From the NCBI GenBank assembly GCA_904063045.1, contig CAJFCJ010000005.1, forward strand, positions 1,069,988 through 1,133,987: a stretch of DNA of 64,000 nucleotides, written 5' to 3'. The stretch's first letter is position 1; every line of letters begins with the position of its first letter. The notes under the pieces were generated by a model. It was not told the origin of the DNA. It saw only the letters and a list, made by a program, of their open reading frames with translations, and made no database searches. Source of the DNA: Dimorphilus gyrociliatus. Taxonomy: Eukaryota > Animalia > Annelida. Of this stretch, positions 56,424 through 64,000 are shown in pieces. Position numbers and translations under genes: made by a program.

Positions 56424-59400
56424 ATGCTCTCGAATAAATTGTTGAAAATTCAAAATTTTAGTCTTCCATTACGATTACAACGTAAAAATTTAACTTCCCC
56501 GTCTAACTATAATGGTGGGCTTTTATTATAAATGTTCTCCTCGCGTTCCTCGTTAATTAACGTTTTCTATCCAGGACTACTACAACTTTCAGAAGAAGTA
56601 CTTGAAGCAAAATCTAATAATAGGCCAATCGTGGCTCTAGAAAGTGCGATAATTACCCATGGAATGCCATATCCCGCTAATTTAGAGTTTGTTTTTATAA
56701 ATAATGTATAAGTTTAGTGTTTTATTTAAGTAATGCAACGTAAAAAGGACAGCGTTAAAAGTTGAGAGCAAAATAAGGCAAGCAAATTCTGTACCAGCAA
56801 CTATAGGCATTATGGATGGCAAACTTAAAGTCGGTTGGTAAACATATTAATTCTTAAATATTTAGTCATTTCGTCTTCAATAGTTAAAATTAAAAGGGCT
56901 TATAAATCCTCATCAATATTATTTAATGGTTCGTAGACAGTACCATTTTCAGATGTATTCAGAAGCGTTTGCATATCTGATTTATTTCGGTTGTTCCTGT
57001 TGCTTCTTCTCTTGAACCAGCAATCCATCAGTAAATAGGTTATAAGCATTATTGTAAAATTCAAAGCCAAATGGTAACCATACATAGCAATCATGAAGTC
57101 AACGTTACGGTGATCATCTCTGGCCCAGTATTTATTGTCATCGCTAGCTGTATTCGTTTAAAATAGAAACTTGAAAACCTATTGAAGCCTAACCCTCTTA
57201 CTTAATACTTACCAGGAAATTTTGAATGAACATCGTACAAGACAAAAGGTGTGTGTATAAACCAGGTTCCCAAAATCATAAGAAAATGTATCCTCGCACA
57301 ACTTAGGATAAAGCTTGCTTTCACATACATTTCCAAAACTAATGAAATGCTCAAGGCAATTAAGTTGAAAACAGGTAGCAAATGAATGATGTATTCAAGG
57401 GGCAATTTTCCTGTTGTATTATGAGAGATATTTATTAGCCAATGTCAATTTTTCGAGAAGTATATTCAAGGAGGTATATACCTTTCATATTTGCGTGGAA
57501 AAAAAAAGAGACGCCGTACCAAAAGACTGCAAGCGATAGTGTAGCAACACCTAAATTTTTTGGCAAGCTTTTAAAGCGATCGTAATATGTAAGTATATCG
57601 ACTATTGAATGTAAGATGAATAGTGTATAAATGGAAACATGCTGTACTTTGGCCAATCCCTTAAAATTATTATCCTTATCCAACGATACGAATCCATCCA
57701 AGAATTCAACGGTCGCTCCTGTAGGCGTTTAGAAAGTTTGTATTCAATTCATAAATATTATTATTCAAACGAACCAAATATACAAAACGACATTTTTAAG
57801 ATACTCTCCAAAGGTACAACTCTTCGGCATATTTTAGTAGGAAAGCTCGCTCCCTGCGCCTCATATTGTCTACCTTGTCTGACTGACTGGTAGGATAGGA
57901 AAGATACGATAATTTGATGTTAGGCTAAATTTTAAATTACCTCTAAATATCGACTAAATATCTTGAACATCCACCAATAAGCGAGAACTAAGAAGAAAGA
58001 GGCTTCATCAACATGACCCCAAAAGGAACCCATATTTAAAGCAGACTTTTGTTGAAAAAATAAGACAGAAATTACGTCCAAATATAAACTCTTTGACTCT
58101 AATGAGTTCAAAACTGTCTTTTAGCTTTCCTTTCTGCACGCTGTAGATATCTCCTTCGTTTGACCTACTGACGATTGATCAATATAACTTTTAGATTAGA
58201 TTATAAATATTATCAATGTTTATTGTTGTAGCTAAAACAGGACAATTGTGGCAAAAGTTGCATGGAAATATGTATAAAATTCAATACTAATACCTAGGTA
58301 GTTCAAACAACTTTAGATGAGGAAAATGCGCCTAATTCCTATTCTCGTCTTTCAATCATAATGTTACAACTGACCTATAATCCCGTTTTCTTAGACTTGT
58401 GATATTTTTTAGGATTAGCCTCTCATGAACTTGAAACTTTAGCTAAATCTTCAAATTCCGTCAAAGTATCGAGAAGAGATTTATCATACGCCTTACTTAA
58501 AGTATTATACTTTTAATACACTTAACTCTCATTAAAACTATGATGATTTTATTTCTCTTTCCTTACATAGCGACGACCTGGTGGTAGCACAGTATCAGCT
58601 AGTATAATAGCAGCAAACCTGGCGGGCATTGATGTTTTTGTTACTGGTGGAATTGGCGGAGTTCATAGAGAAGTTGAAAAATGTTTATATCTAACAATCC
58701 TCTCTTTTTTTATATTATTAAATTTTGGCAAATTCCATAGCTCTAGATATAAGTGCTGATTTAACTGAGCTGAGTAGGTCGAGAATTGCAGTTGTTTCTG
58801 CTGGAGTTAAATCAATTTTGGATATAGAAAAAACTCTTGAATTTCTTGTAAAAAAGAAAATTACTAATTAATTTTTGTAAATAGAAAATACTGTAAATCT
58901 TTTCTTGTTTGTTTGATTTAGGAGACGATGGGTGTTTTTGTGGCCACTTATCAAAAAACACAATTTCCCGCGTTTTTTACTTCAAATTCGGATTCTAAAT
59001 CACCTTATACTTTTGAATCCTCAAAGGAAGCGGCTGAGATTTTCCGTATATTCTTCTTTATTATATTAGAGTGTATTGTTCTTTTTATAAAAGCATTTTA
59101 TTAACCTTTTCCTAGATAAACAAAAAGTTTTAGGTCTTCGCAGTGGTTGCTTATTTGCGATTCCGATACCCGAGAATAATTCAATTCCTAAAGATTTCAT
59201 TGATAACGCCATTCACTCTTCCATGGATGAGATTAGGTATTTAAAAAAAGTATAAAATATCTTTTATACACTTGGTAAGTTTCTGAACAGAGAGAAAGAA
59301 ATCAAAGGAAAGGAAGTAACTCCGTTTTTACTGACAAAAGTAAAAGATTTAACAAGAGGATTATCATTAGAAGCTAGTATCCTTTTTTGGTATATTAAAT

Positions 59401-59543
59401 ATTCGTAATATTATCTTCATGATCTTTTTTTGTATCTAACAACCAAAATCCTTAACTGAATTTTTAAAGACATAGCACTAATATTAAATAACGCACAAAT
59501 TGGCGGAGAAATAGCTTGCGAATTGAAAAACCTAGAATCCTAA
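56424..59543 (+). CDS. psuG: Pseudouridine-5'-phosphate glycosidase (PsuG/IndA family); exons 56424-56481, 56575-56686, 56748-56833, 58413-58501, 58571-58682, 58741-58847, 58922-59045, 59116-59236, 59291-59376, 59470-59543
   Basis: [75 protein letters not shown]. Confidence 0.93.
56900..58033 (-). CDS. TMEM45: TMEM45-family membrane protein nested in psuG intron 3; exons 58033-57941, 57886-57775, 57718-57482, 57410-57213, 57147-56900
   Basis: MGSFWGH...FFL..WW start, QHVSIY, FFFH, EYIIHLL, GTWF and W..DDHRNVDF...H motifs; lies wholly inside intron 56834-58412. Confidence 0.85.
59377..59469 (+). other. U12-type (minor spliceosome) GT-AG intron in psuG
   Basis: 5' site GTATCCTTTT, branch TCCTTAAC at 59449-59456, AG at 59468-59469 with no real polypyrimidine tract; removal restores ANIAL. 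Confidence 0.88.
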
Positions 59544-59944
59544 AAGTGAGTAGATTCAAGATAAGAATTGAAATAAATGAATAAAAACTATTGCTAATTC
59601 TATTTATTTATTCAGATTAGGCAAAAAACATTGTGATAAATTGATTTATTTCCTGTTAGAATGATAGCTTCACTTTTTATTAAATTGTATCCATTTTGAT
59701 ACTTGAATGGATTTATGGTGGATACTCTGTTTTCTTCCTAAGAGCTTAGATTTAAAAAGTATCATTCATTTGGCCTAGTACCAAATAAAAAATAAAAAAT
59801 TTCGTTTTTCAAGTCAATCACTCTTTAAATTTATTCTGTAATTAAAAATATCAACTAAAACTATGTTTAAAGTGGCTTTGTTTACCAAACCATTGTTATC
59901 AAGTAGTAGATGCTTCAAGTTTAAAAAGAATTAGAGCCGATAAG

Positions 59945-61334
59945 CTAAGGTTTAAGAATTTCATCATCAGAATTTTCCGAAAGTAGGGGCTCTGCATCGA
60001 AAGATCTCTTTTTCTTTATGCAGGAGCACGGCATTAGAAGGCATGTTCTAAGGACAATCAATACACCAATGCATATAATAGATACAATAAAACAGGGTAA
60101 GTAATGACGCCTGGAGTGAACTATATTGCGTGCAACAGACTGTATGAAATACGGGAGACATCCTCTTTTGGAAATTATATCACTCATATTATATTGCTGA
60201 GTCACAATTCTGCGTCCATAGTTGTCATACTTTTCCTGATGATTGTATCTATCTTCTCCAAAGCACATTGTGTTCTGTTGATATTTGGAGCAAGATTCAG
60301 GTATAGTTTTCCAATCTTTATACGAGAATATTCCACAACACGGGCACTGTTCAAGTAAAGGAAAAAGTTGATTGAAAAAGCCAACTTGTAAAATTAATCA
60401 CACTTACATTTAATTGAACAGCCTCCCAAGCGTTTCTCATACTGTAGCTAGCAAAGCCATCTGTGTCGGCTACTTTCACAGAATAGCGAAGGCTATTAAT
60501 AAGTCTATTACTCTCCTGATTATAGAAATAAATAGAAAAAGTTAGTCTTCATTTTTAAAAAAGATAATGTTTTGAAATAATTTACTCTTTCTGTAATTAA
60601 ATCTGAGTCATATATATCTCTGGATTGTACCATTCCCAGTCCAGCTCCGTTAAGAACAATACAGACAACTAATAATCCAATAAACTAAAGGGTAATAAAA
60701 ACAATATCACTACATGATTGATAAAGAATATTTGCATAAATATATACTATATATAAATTGTTATAGCACTTACTGTTGCATAGTCCCTCTTTTTGAAAAA
60801 GACTACGATCATGCCAACAACTGAAACTGAAAGGGTTAAAATTCCGCAAGACAAAAATAAATAATCGGCCACTGTCCAATGGATAAAAACTGATCTGTCC
60901 AATAAATCATACCAACATTTTCGATTGTAATAATTGCCAACTTGCGCAGAATATCTGAAAATTGCATTTTGTTTTTATTCTCCAAATATATTAATATATA
61001 AACTTGAGCAGAATTTGTTGAAAACTAACCTGCAACCGTGTGATCTACTAGGTGTTTGATCGAATTTCATCAAACCCAAAGAAATCAGAATTGCTATTCC
61101 GAATACGGCGCCCAAGATGTTTAGGAACATAACTACTCCATATTTTACTTTTTTCCCATCAAGTGACGGTGTTTTCAAACATCCCATTGATGGAGCCTGT
61201 GTCATCTCTTTAGGATGTTGTTTTAAATTTCTTGTTTGTAGACTACATCGTAGACCGCAAACGTCCAAAACACAAAGAAGCCTTTGAAATCCATTAGGAT
61301 CCTTTTCCATCTCTGCCTCAGTGTTTGTGTCCAT
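59945..61334 (-). CDS. Tetraspanin-like protein, 364 aa; exons 61334-61030, 60954-60774, 60684-60586, 60515-60408, 60346-59945
   Basis: Four hydrophobic segments; large loop with CCG, DW, PESC and GC motifs (CPCCGIFSYKDWKTIPESC...GCL); phases compatible. Confidence 0.85.
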
Positions 61335-62195
61335 ATTAGCTCTCTTCAAATAAGTTCTAATTCCACGCGTACCAATTTAAGTAGTTCGTGAATCTACTTA
61401 AATATGAAAACCATAGTAGTGACATCTGTATAATATTATTTGCTTTTTGTATTCAGTTGTCTTGATTTAACCTTATACAACAATATACTTAAAAAATATA
61501 TGTAACATTTTTGTCTGAATATAATGTAATGTAAGCCTATTTATAGCAAAAGGACCTCCTTTTTAAGATTTTAGAGATGTCGCAATAGAGTAAAGTTTTA
61601 CGAAATAGTAATGTGACTCATACTCGTTGTTTACGAAGTACGTGTACATATTTCAAGTTTTGAAAAGCTAACTAATTCAATAGGTGTCTTTATTGAGTAA
61701 ATAGAAGAATCTATCACACTTAATCCCGCCTTGTGAAGATATTTGTTAAAAACGAAATAAAAACAAAGATTTCATTCTTTTCCTTCCGTTTTCTTCAACT
61801 TGAAAGTTGAAATTCTTAAACATTCGTTCGATCATAATTACTTATGAAACAAAATTTTCATTGGAGTTGAATTCAAAATATTTTGAATAGGCTTAGAGAA
61901 AATCAATGTTTCTTAATGATTGGACCATGCGTCTCTTAAAAAGTTTAAACAGGTTTTCCATAAAATTCTTGCTAGATAATAAATCTTTCGCATTTGTCAC
62001 TTAAAAAATATAGATTATTGAAAATTAACTATCTTTGCCGCTCAAGGTGATCGTTTGAACAACATTAGTCTTTTTATAAACTTACAATATCATCAATTCA
62101 CTACTTTTACTGTCTTTCCCGTATTTAGACAGTACTCAGTCCAAAGATTCACATGAATGTAATATCGCTCATTGCTACCAAATAAATTTTAGAGG

Positions 62196-64000
62196 ATGTT
62201 CTCCCGCAAATGTCATAAAATCTTGTTAAATTTTGCTACAAATTCAAAATTTAATAGGAAAATTTCAATTTCCAGTAAACGTTTATTTTTTATAGTTATA
62301 TAAATAGTTTACAAATACTAGAGAACACATATAGATATTATATTGTAGATACTATATCCATAATATAAATATTCTACACTATTTAGTTTCTGGACAAAAG
62401 TCAAACGGGAGAATTTATCCATCTTTCAGCTCAAAGTCTTTAGCTAACTTTTTAGCGAAAAAGTAAGAAAGGATAATTATAAAATAGATTAAAAAATTGT
62501 CCACTGAATTATTAAAGAACAGGTAATTTTTCAACAAACAACACCAATGAAATTACCAAAAAAGCAGTAAGGTTCTATGTCAAGTTCTTTTTGAAGCTTA
62601 AATTAAAAGAGATCAACGTATTTTGCAGATTGTAATCGGCGGAACAAACGTCGATTTCACTGCAGTCTTTGGAACATCTAACGTCAAAGTAATACTTATT
62701 AAACAAAGAATTTTTAATTATTTAATCAACTTGATCACTAGGAAGATGGCGCTACATATCCAGGTACTGTTAGATATAACTTTGGTGGAGTTGGAAGAAA
62801 CTTAGCTGATTGCTTGACGCGACTGAATGCCAATATACAATTTATATCCGCCATCGGAAATGACTATTTTGGCGAGAGCATTTACAATAAATGTAATCAC
62901 ATGGTAAGAATGAAAAATGCCAATATAAGCTCATTAAATTCATAGTTCATTTTCCATGTTATTATCTATCGTGTTTCAAAAAGAACTTTGACAGCATTCT
63001 GAGGTCAGAAACAAATCGAACAGCAACCTATTGTGGTGTATGTAAAAGCGATGGAGAGGTTTTGAATGGTATTGGTGATTTCGATATTCACCAGATAATC
63101 ACTCCAGATTACGTAATTATAAGAGAATTATAGAAGAAATTGCAGAATAATTGTCTAATATACTGTTCTTTATTCCATAGTTGCAAACCTTTGAAACAGA
63201 ATTAAAAGAAGCTAGTTTGGTGTTTGTTGATGGCAATATTCCAAAAGAATCAATATCGTATATATGCAACGTTTGTCAAAAAGCAAATACTCCTGGTTTG
63301 TCATTGAATAACTTATGATCTTTATAGTTCTTTCATAGAATATATCTCATTTCAAAAAGTTTGGTTTGAACCAACCGATTTGAATTTGGCTTATAAAGGA
63401 TTGAATTGCAATTTTACTTATACGTCACCAAATTTGGATGAATTGAGGGCCATGTCTCCAAGTCCGCAACCTTTAGGTAGTTAATTTAATTTTATCTGTT
63501 GATGAATATTTTTTTTTATCTATCTTCTGAATAGGGAAGTTATTTAAAAAAGACAATGTTAATCTGGCCGCATCACTGGGGAATAATTTGTTAAACTCCA
63601 TTCCAAATATATTAATAACTTTAGGAAAACATGGTGTTCTGCTTTGTCAAAGAAATGAGGTAGTTGTAAAAATTTCGAATGTAGCTGAGCAATCTCTCCT
63701 ATAATTAAATAGGTATCATTCAACAAAAGAACATTTAGGTACTTTCCGGTTAAAGAGTGTACAAACGTTGAAAATGTTCTAGGAGCGGGAGATTGGTAAA
63801 TAAATAGATAAGCCTAATCTCAAGTAATTTTTAATTAACGATTTCAGTTTGGCTGCAACGTTTGCCTATCATCATATTTTACAAGATATGGACGTAATAA
63901 GTTCAATGCAATTGGGGTTATTGGCTGCTCAAATATCGTTGACGTCCATAGAGGCTGTTTCAGCAAGTATAGTTAATATCAATTTAGAGAAATCTAAGGC
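62196..64000 (+). CDS. PfkB/ribokinase-family pseudouridine kinase, 3'-partial; exons 62196-62274, 62523-62566, 62629-62688, 62742-62903, 62984-63112, 63181-63295, 63360-63476, 63535-63659, 63713-63795, 63848-end
   Basis: IVIGGTNVD, FGGVGRNLA, SAIGND, VDGN, WFEPT, SPNLDEL, ITLGKHG and the anion-hole GAGD. The first two exons (basic leader MFSRKCHKILL...) are inferred. Confidence 0.88.

Follow-up and report, generated by a model that had tools for sequence, protein, structure and literature searches.

How does a gene that is otherwise fused across animals come to lie in two pieces? This question is raised by a locus of the annelid Dimorphilus gyrociliatus within a 64-kilobase (kb) window, the whole stretch of DNA analysed here, whose numbering is used below. 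The window has a G+C content of 32% and short introns. A predicted pseudouridine-5'-phosphate glycosidase gene lies upstream and a predicted PfkB-family pseudouridine kinase gene downstream, both on the plus strand, with a probable tetraspanin gene between them on the minus strand. In animals the two activities reside on one polypeptide, although the animal enzymes are uncharacterised, while in bacteria and plants separate genes are the rule (PMC7797080). The Dimorphilus locus is best explained as a completed, lineage-specific fission of the fused glycosidase-kinase gene, with a probability of roughly 0.88. This reading is supported by independent spliced transcripts of the two halves, by the fused ancestral state, and by an exon structure collinear with that of fused orthologues. 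An earlier first-pass annotation, made from the letters alone, had placed the two genes on one strand, in fusion order and about 2.6 kb apart; the Pfam families Indigoidine_A and PfkB confirm this order, and the distance from the glycosidase stop (TAA, ending at 59543) to the kinase ATG at 62196 is 2.65 kb.

The first point to settle is whether the halves are still expressed together. Contigs of four runs were aligned to positions 58100-64000: one of DNA (X1), whose contig is identical to the window, and three of RNA, namely X2 from a 2017 study and X3 and X4 from a 2020 study. The RNA runs were taken as transcriptome assemblies on the strength of the GT..AG and CT..AC joints present in them, and X2 bears Illumina adaptor ends. 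No base difference or indel was found in any of the four runs over this range. The features around the break, with lengths in nucleotides (nt), are as follows.

59377 to 59469, plus strand: intron 9 of the glycosidase gene, U12-type; joint 59376 to 59470 in the three RNA runs.
59470 to 59545, plus strand: last coding exon of the glycosidase, 76 nt, with the stop TAA at 59541-59543; it is equivalent to the 5' portion of linker exon 10 in the ancestral gene.
59546 to 59615, plus strand: intron in the glycosidase 3' untranslated region (UTR), 70 nt, GT..AG, beginning 2 nt past the stop; joint 59545 to 59616 in X2, X3 and X4.
59616 to 59947 (provisional end), plus strand: terminal 3'UTR exon of the glycosidase, with AATAAA at 59784 and 59791; it overlaps the convergent tetraspanin 3' end.
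59945 to 61334, minus strand: tetraspanin gene, coding exons 61334-61030, 60954-60774, 60684-60585, 60514-60408 and 60346-59945; CT..AC joints in the three runs.
61335 to 62195, no strand: divergent spacer from the tetraspanin ATG to the kinase ATG, 861 nt, presumed to be a shared promoter region.
62196-62274 (k1), 62387-62462 (k2) and 62518-62566 (k3), plus strand: kinase-specific 5' exons; joints in X2, X3 and X4.
62629-62688 (60 nt, IVIGGTNVDF), 62742-62903 (162 nt), 62984-63112 (129 nt) and 63181-63295 (115 nt), plus strand: kinase domain exons, Pfam PfkB, with lengths and phases as in Patella.
63360-63476, 63535-63659, 63713-63795 (GAGD) and from 63848, plus strand: further kinase domain exons, the last leaving the window end at 64000.

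In the kinase contigs, joints connect 62274 to 62387, 62462 to 62518, 62566 to 62629 and 62688 to 62742. The three leading exons (79 + 76 + 49 = 204 nt, or 68 codons) are thus spliced in frame and join the IVIGG exon in phase 0 at 62629; just 5' of the ATG at 62196 the same frame is closed by a stop. The proposal that the kinase has its own ATG exon at 62196 is therefore borne out in X2, X3 and X4, and the small upstream exon that had been placed at 62523 actually starts at 62518. The kinase contigs begin at about 62174 in X4, at 62225 in X3 and at 61673 in X2, and X3 and X4 have no cover at 61449-61842. On the glycosidase side, the GTGAGT donor at 59546 is active in all three RNA runs, and its partner is the acceptor at 59616; the junctions from it into the kinase that had been proposed for checking (59545-62629 or 59545-62523) are replaced by this short splice. 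No glycosidase exon occurs in the kinase contigs of X2, X3 and X4, and no listed joint connects the two genes in these runs. The two halves are separate spliced transcripts.

Beyond the acceptor at 59616, the glycosidase contigs continue unbroken to 60063 or 60346, into tetraspanin exons whose introns are of the CT..AC form, and therefore the 3' ends of these two convergent genes overlap. The unstranded contigs fuse the glycosidase and tetraspanin mRNAs over 59616-60346. The plus-strand AATAAA signals at 59784 and 59791 and a minus-strand TTTATT at 59830 stand within 50 nt of one another.

A second possibility is that the locus is still one fused gene, disguised by an assembly error or a polymorphism in a run of five A residues (A5), or read through by ribosomal or splicing recoding past the stop to give a bifunctional protein. 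The coordinates on which this idea was built are exact by direct inspection of the plus strand: AAAAA at 59526-59530, TAA at 59541-59543 and GTGAGT at 59546-59551. Its arithmetic is sound as well. The exon 59470-59545 is entered in phase 1 and falls one base short of a phase-0 end, and one base added anywhere within it brings the donor at 59546 into phase 0, the phase of the acceptor at 62629. The transcripts, however, speak against it. Between the joints 59376/59470 and 59545/59616 the exon has exactly 76 letters in X2, X3 and X4, without an indel; therefore the run is A5 in the RNA of two studies and in the DNA contig. These data exclude an assembly error and argue against a common polymorphism. 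Recoding fares no better: the messenger RNA splices from 59545 to 59616 and misses the kinase, and the shifted frame on this spliced message (a 33-residue read) gives PRILKIRQKTL and then a stop. Together with the kinase's own ATG exon and in-frame splicing, this leaves a persisting fusion very improbable.

The present reading frame also bears on where the frame may have been lost. The glycosidase ends in ELKNLES*, which is homologous to the conserved EL-x-x-L end of the glycosidase domain in fused relatives, as in IACELSQLRKS (Capitella), IALCLSQLESG (Physella) and IAVELSNLRKQ (Tegillarca); the Leu in question, four residues past EL, is conserved in most sequences. An A added to the run would yield ELKKPRILK, with Pro in place of that Leu. 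The A-run, to which the frame loss had been assigned, is therefore probably not its site, and a frameshift, if there was any, would lie in the last eleven bases, 59535-59545. Loss of most of the linker by deletion is as likely as the loss of a single base.

Was the gene ever fused in this lineage? Orthologues in relatives, the comparison that the first-pass annotation had proposed, give a clear answer. A search with the 54-residue kinase exon against all protein representatives had its best full-length matches in fused proteins, 650-750 residues long, from bivalves, gastropods, sea urchin, tardigrade, shark and nematode, all with Indigoidine_A followed by PfkB. A word search with the Patella protein added further fused molluscs, a nemertean, hemichordates, vertebrates and the early-branching annelid Owenia, where the fused open reading frame has 731 residues. 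Annotated proteins of D. gyrociliatus were absent from the matches of both protein searches. In a second annelid, Capitella, every Dimorphilus exon has a counterpart, in order and on one strand; its exon 10 carries the glycosidase end and a 23-residue linker, reads ..IACELSQLRKSKANRTKHYPQGKPAQKKGRI|GTGAGT, and is followed by a 52-nt phase-0 intron and then VVIGGTNVDF.

The Owenia fusiformis orthologue (L005:3001-5196) is a single uninterrupted frame of 2196 nt, where molluscs have 17 introns, and it looks like a retrocopy turned into a working gene. Several public models of the family are faulty (at L001:10001-12595 in Capitella, at L004 in Agrilus and at L006:10001-17900). The Capitella model ELT92569.1 omits half of the glycosidase and ends before a large intron. 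Two apparent precedents for a separate kinase were examined and set aside: the 'kinase-only' protein P0232 of Agrilus reflects an assembly duplication (a block with Ns) inside a fused locus, and the Nezara model P0239 starts partway through the 162-nt kinase exon. In Macrobrachium the gene extends over 178 kb. No claim is made on fissions in arthropods.

The exon structure ties the two Dimorphilus genes to the fused form more closely. The Patella and Physella exons were placed exactly on their genomes and compared with those of Dimorphilus. Exon lengths (in nt) are as follows.

Patella fused gene: 151, 112, 86, 92, 112, 107, 130, 121, 86, 155, 60, 162, 129, 115, 144, 137, 80, 238.
Dimorphilus glycosidase gene: 91, 112, 86, 89, 112, 107, 124, 121, 86, 76.
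Dimorphilus kinase gene, after its own three exons: 60, 162, 129, 115, 117, 125, 83, then one leaving the window.

The kinase domain exons correspond in length and phase to Patella exons 11-18, and, on either side of the break, all intron phases agree with those of Patella and Physella. The sole discontinuity is formed by exon 10, which in relatives encodes the glycosidase C terminus and the linker, and by intron 10, a phase-0 intron directly 5' of the 60-nt VVIGG exon. It follows that a single ancestral gene, severed at the linker, gave rise to both genes. The correspondence extends to splice-site class. The donor of glycosidase intron 9 (GTATCCTTTTTT) fits the U12 form GTATCCTT, and its branch site TCCTTAAC ends 13 nt before the AG; this intron is also U12-type in Patella and Physella (donor GTATCCTT) and in Capitella (L001:11644-11719; donor ATATCCTT, branch CCCTTAAC).

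These comparisons bear directly on the idea that the genes were never fused in the Dimorphilus lineage and preserve an older separate state, as in plants and bacteria. The rule of separate genes in those groups (PMC7797080) would speak for it. Against it stand the fused form in Owenia, Capitella, molluscs, a nemertean, hemichordates, echinoderms, vertebrates, a tardigrade and a nematode, the fusion order of the Dimorphilus genes on one strand, and the fact that outside the break the fused mollusc gene has all the same intron positions and phases, down to the phase-0 acceptor that precedes IVIGG. Judged by the sequence comparison, the shared exon structure refutes a never-fused origin. Fused orthologues and matching exon structure together indicate that the split is a derived gene fission. 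Nor is the pair an operon, since the species has neither operons nor trans-splicing (PMC7854359). The same source gives a median intron of 66 nt, which the intron sizes in the window fit. The word 'fission' is absent from that genome paper (PMC7854359), and no report of this split is found there.

The course of the fission can be sketched as follows. The ancestor would have encoded a single bifunctional protein, with an N-terminal pseudouridine-5'-phosphate glycosidase, a short linker and a pseudouridine kinase, and the break would have fallen at the linker exon and the intron 10 behind it. The upstream gene now terminates at the TAA right after the last glycosidase helix, with a 70-nt intron removed and a short 3'UTR that overlaps the convergent tetraspanin tail. 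The downstream gene starts about 860 nt from the tetraspanin head, and its three private exons are spliced in phase 0 to what used to be the first exon of the kinase part. The two polypeptides would presumably still act in sequence, and the new kinase leader may be a targeting peptide in place of one that the kinase lost. The donor at 59546 may have descended from the intron-10 donor and be paired now with a nearby acceptor. The tetraspanin gene is convergent with the glycosidase gene and divergent from the kinase gene. With the glycosidase 3' end facing its tail and the kinase start near its head, the layout suggests that the terminator and promoter regions flanking the tetraspanin supply the new end and the new start. 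The details of the fossil donor and of the tetraspanin flanks have roughly even odds.

The donor deserves separate attention, as it had been described as a relic. That a strong and real donor follows the stop holds true, but it is not idle, as it serves the 70-nt intron of the 3'UTR. Chance would rarely place such a donor 2 nt past the stop, since the plus strand of the 64-kb window has 29 GTRAGT sites, or about 0.005 expected per 10 nt. An exon junction so close behind the stop is too near to flag the message for nonsense-mediated decay. Descent from the intron-10 donor is also favoured by the rarity of intron gain in this species (PMC7854359). A long intron 10 holding the tetraspanin is plausible, because the same gene splices a 1579-nt intron with a nested minus-strand DUF716 gene.

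A rival within the fission family places the change elsewhere. A segment with the tetraspanin and the first kinase-specific exons would have landed within the linker exon itself, by insertion or rearrangement; k3 (..NEITKKA|) would then be the linker remnant, the donor at 62567 the ancestral intron-10 donor, and the GTGAGT at 59546 a later or chance arrival. The intron 62567-62628 is indeed in phase 0 and directly 5' of the 60-nt IVIGG exon, like intron 10 in Patella, Physella and Capitella. In addition, the donor at 59546 stands in phase 2 in the native frame, and the inter-domain intron of relatives is short (52 to 590 nt) and without a tetraspanin. An insertion leaves unexplained, however, the strong donor 2 nt past the stop, and it requires the gain of an intron in the 3'UTR and of others in the kinase gene, yet the species gains few introns (PMC7854359). 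The exon k3 has no similarity to any linker, though linkers are unconserved anyway. Such an event is unlikely, though it is a serious contender; as for the donor at 59546 alone, its survival from ancestral intron 10, set against an insertion into the linker exon, has roughly even odds.

A cause of the fission may also be proposed, with odds somewhat poorer than even. An antisense gene in the inter-domain intron would have provoked the split, its terminator providing the glycosidase 3' end and its bidirectional promoter the kinase start; the old intron-10 donor would persist in fossil form, kept in use by a cryptic acceptor at a distance of 70 nt (the introns of the species being about 66 nt), and the kinase would then have gained its leader and diverged, with Lys166 changed to Leu.

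Gene fission classically proceeds by duplication and then complementary decay of the copies. Applied to this locus, a tandem duplication of the fused gene would have been followed by loss of the kinase from the upstream copy and of the glycosidase from the downstream copy. Besides this general precedent, one hint of a copied 5' end came from k1 (FNRKISIS..), 10 residues of which resemble the leader at the N terminus of the Patella protein (FNRRISVSS). The match is not significant, as 41 of 300 shuffles score equally, and the homology of the kinase leader to the fused N-terminal leader (FNRRISVSS..NGRI in Patella) was accordingly rejected; k2 and k3 gave no match. Nine decayed exons could not be accommodated in the 430 nt that separate the leader from the kinase domain. 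Relic exons were sought in 59544-62628 (3.08 kb) with ten fused orthologues as tblastn queries and with a profile built from 128 fused proteins, and nothing rose above shuffled controls; the best profile score was 0.0 bits, within the range of 20 shuffles. One tblastn match of 28 residues at 62119-62199 to kinase exon 12 (E 0.11) was dropped, as it scored -2 bits against the profile. An origin by duplication is therefore improbable here. Fissions in a fused pathway gene are available for comparison (PMC4224340).

Both halves look functional, with canonical splice sites, representation in three transcriptomes, open frames and conserved residues. The glycosidase was assessed exon by exon with Pfam, and the PDB and protein searches with Dimorphilus sequence were likewise run on single exons. 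Its remaining features are listed here.

56424 to 56514, plus strand: predicted glycosidase exon 1, a basic leader without an acidic residue; 91 nt, ending in phase 1.
56575 to 56686, plus strand: glycosidase exon 2, 112 nt, where the Indigoidine_A domain begins (Pfam); length and phase equal those of mollusc exon 2.
56748 to 56833, plus strand: glycosidase exon 3, 86 nt.
56834 to 58412, plus strand for the gene and minus strand for the gene nested in it: glycosidase intron 3, 1579 nt, containing a DUF716-family gene.
58413-58501, 58571-58682, 58741-58847, 58922-59045, 59116-59236 and 59291-59376, plus strand: glycosidase exons 4-9, supported by GT..AG joints in X2, X3 and X4 and by Pfam.

An in-frame ATG at 56532, within the 60-nt intron after exon 1, offers an alternative start; the model starting at 56424 (a 91-nt exon, a phase-1 intron and a 112-nt exon) matches the exon 1/2 structure of Patella and Physella. 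Splicing over intron 3 is evidenced by an X3 contig whose loose end at 58412 equals 56805-56832. Four of six scanned exons (56532-59234) exceed the gathering threshold of Indigoidine_A (PF04227), with E values of 1e-9 to 1.6e-14 (1e-12 to 1.6e-14 for the strongest), and a fifth reaches 1.5e-4. All nine glycosidase exons align collinearly to fused orthologues. The catalytic Lys in SAGVKSILD aligns with the AtPUMY Lys in structure 8k05, which is Ala in the variant 8k06. Conservation was measured on columns at least 95% conserved in 128 fused animal proteins, and the glycosidase has the consensus residue at 93 of 102 of these. By profile and catalytic Lys it belongs to the PsuG/PUMY family, and it is predicted to cleave the C-C bond of pseudouridine 5'-phosphate.

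For the kinase, the exon 62742-62903 matches Pfam PfkB (PF00294), and PDB matches comprise a 'probable sugar kinase' (3kzh, 1.7e-7), E. coli PsuK (7.6e-7) and ribokinase (2.6e-3), which places the protein nearer to pseudouridine kinases than to ribokinases. Exon 63362-63475, searched alone against the PDB, gave nothing relevant. The orthologous kinase half of Patella matches AtPUKI at 4e-37, and residues were mapped through this Patella-AtPUKI alignment. The Dimorphilus kinase has the consensus residue at 47 of 49 highly conserved columns. The motifs IVIGGTNVDF, WFEPT, VLGAGD, DGATYPG (Thr) and VDGNI (Asn) are present, and the counterparts of AtPUKI Asp12, Thr26, Asn137, Glu160 and the GAGD Asp are kept. 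In AtPUKI the GAGD Asp is catalytic, Asp12 binds ribose and Glu160 belongs to the Mg shell, while Thr26, Asn137 and Lys166 read the base, Lys166 at O2 (PMC7797080). By descent the kinase is a pseudouridine kinase orthologue.

The new leader of the kinase is basic and rich in Ser and Asn: its 68 residues include 12 Lys/Arg and 16 Ser/Thr, and the first acidic residue is one Glu at position 61. Its composition resembles that of fused-orthologue N termini and of the first exon predicted for the glycosidase. No homologue of k1-k3 was found. The leader may be a targeting peptide. The plant pseudouridine enzymes are said, by Chen and Witte in 2020, to be peroxisomal.

Several observations weigh against the fission reading or parts of it. 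The position of Lys166 is occupied by Leu (codon 63374-63376, in exon 63360-63476), so that EPTDLNLA stands against EPTDxxKA in at least 95% of the 128 fused proteins, and plant and bacterial pseudouridine kinases also have Lys there. In AtPUKI, the K166A change raises Km 2.5-fold and lowers kcat 5.7-fold, an approximately 14-fold loss of efficiency (PMC7797080). Full kinase activity is accordingly uncertain, and the kinase may have relaxed or shifted its specificity following the split. The RNA evidence comes entirely from assembled contigs; because these lose rare forms, a rare isoform joining 59545 to the kinase, or a rare allele with six A residues, could still exist. Eight further joints are unlisted, six of which are counted as later kinase introns and two are unaccounted for. 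The X2 kinase contig reaches upstream to 61673. The X1 DNA contig may be the assembly's own source. As for the fossil donor, its present phase 2 differs from the ancestral phase 0, which means that its ancestry requires an extra indel, and the intron 62567-62628 may descend from intron 10 just as well. Finally, the annelids compared are Owenia and Capitella, which are not as close to Dimorphilus as Trilobodrilus and Dinophilus are.

The neighbouring genes have features of their own. The gene between the halves on the other strand, which had been recognised as a tetraspanin, is probably one: its translation has four transmembrane segments and a CPCCG motif, and its last exon alone matches Pfam Tetraspanin (PF00335) with E=5e-7, at 30.0 bits against a cut-off of 32.1. 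The Atlas neighbours of this minus-strand gene are tetraspanins (0.88). Fragments of its open reading frame, which are not exact exons, gave no Pfam match. The minus-strand gene in glycosidase intron 3 is assigned to the DUF716 family by a Pfam match on 57202-57405 (E=1.6e-7) and has a separate contig (X3 record 8) with its 5' end at 58298. Contigs of X2 and X4 carry 58292-58501 unspliced over the intron 3 acceptor; as these adjoin the 5' end at 58298, a divergent transcript may arise from within the intron.

Nested genes occur elsewhere in the family. One intron of the fused gene, the phase-1 intron after the 115-nt kinase exon, contains three Claudin_2-family genes on the other strand in Capitella (L001:13059-18847) and Agrilus (L004:20352-25839), and the kinase gene of the shrimp Macrobrachium has two more Claudin_2 genes inside. 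In Dimorphilus the corresponding intron (63296-63359) is 64 nt long and empty, and in Patella and Physella no gene is called inside it. This may be an ancient nested-gene arrangement.

The split provides a natural experiment in which the two activities are uncoupled in an animal, with the breakpoint resolved to one exon and one intron and with both products supported by RNA. It opens the question of what role the fusion plays in channelling the toxic intermediate pseudouridine monophosphate, of how a downstream domain gains a promoter, a start codon and a targeting peptide, and of whether an opposite-strand gene inside an intron can seed a fission. It also corrects annotation, as several 'kinase-only' or odd animal models are artefacts.

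Among known systems, the closest is the animal and fungal bifunctional protein (S. pombe C1861.05 type; zebrafish zgc:136858; Patella XP_050409390.1), which has the same domains, order and strand as the Dimorphilus pair. Intron positions and phases, including the U12 intron 9, and a basic N-terminal leader are common to both, and 140 of 151 highly conserved residues are kept. In contrast to it, Dimorphilus has two transcription units and two open reading frames with a tetraspanin in between, a stop right after the glycosidase, a lost linker, a new three-exon, 68-residue kinase leader, and Leu at the Lys166 position.

The enzymes of Arabidopsis (PUKI, At1g49350, and PUMY) and of E. coli (psuK/psuG, or yeiC/yeiN) are separate polypeptides, as in Dimorphilus, and share with it the Lys of SAGVKSILD, the GAGD Asp and the equivalents of Thr26, Asn137 and Glu160. 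Unlike theirs, the separation in Dimorphilus is secondarily derived from a fusion, and its genes are still neighbours in fusion order. E. coli keeps psuK and psuG in an operon, whereas Dimorphilus has no operons (PMC7854359).

Among gene fissions, monkey-king of Drosophila is a documented eukaryotic case. The folB-folK-folP fissions offer another parallel, as there too a multidomain metabolic gene was broken between domains into two expressed genes (PMC4224340). Dimorphilus differs from the documented fissions in having no trace of duplication and degeneration, a break at an intron, a donor that would have survived in a 3'UTR intron, and an antisense gene in the gap. The Dimorphilus split is thus a new, RNA-supported instance of a known process, in a gene that is otherwise fused across animals.

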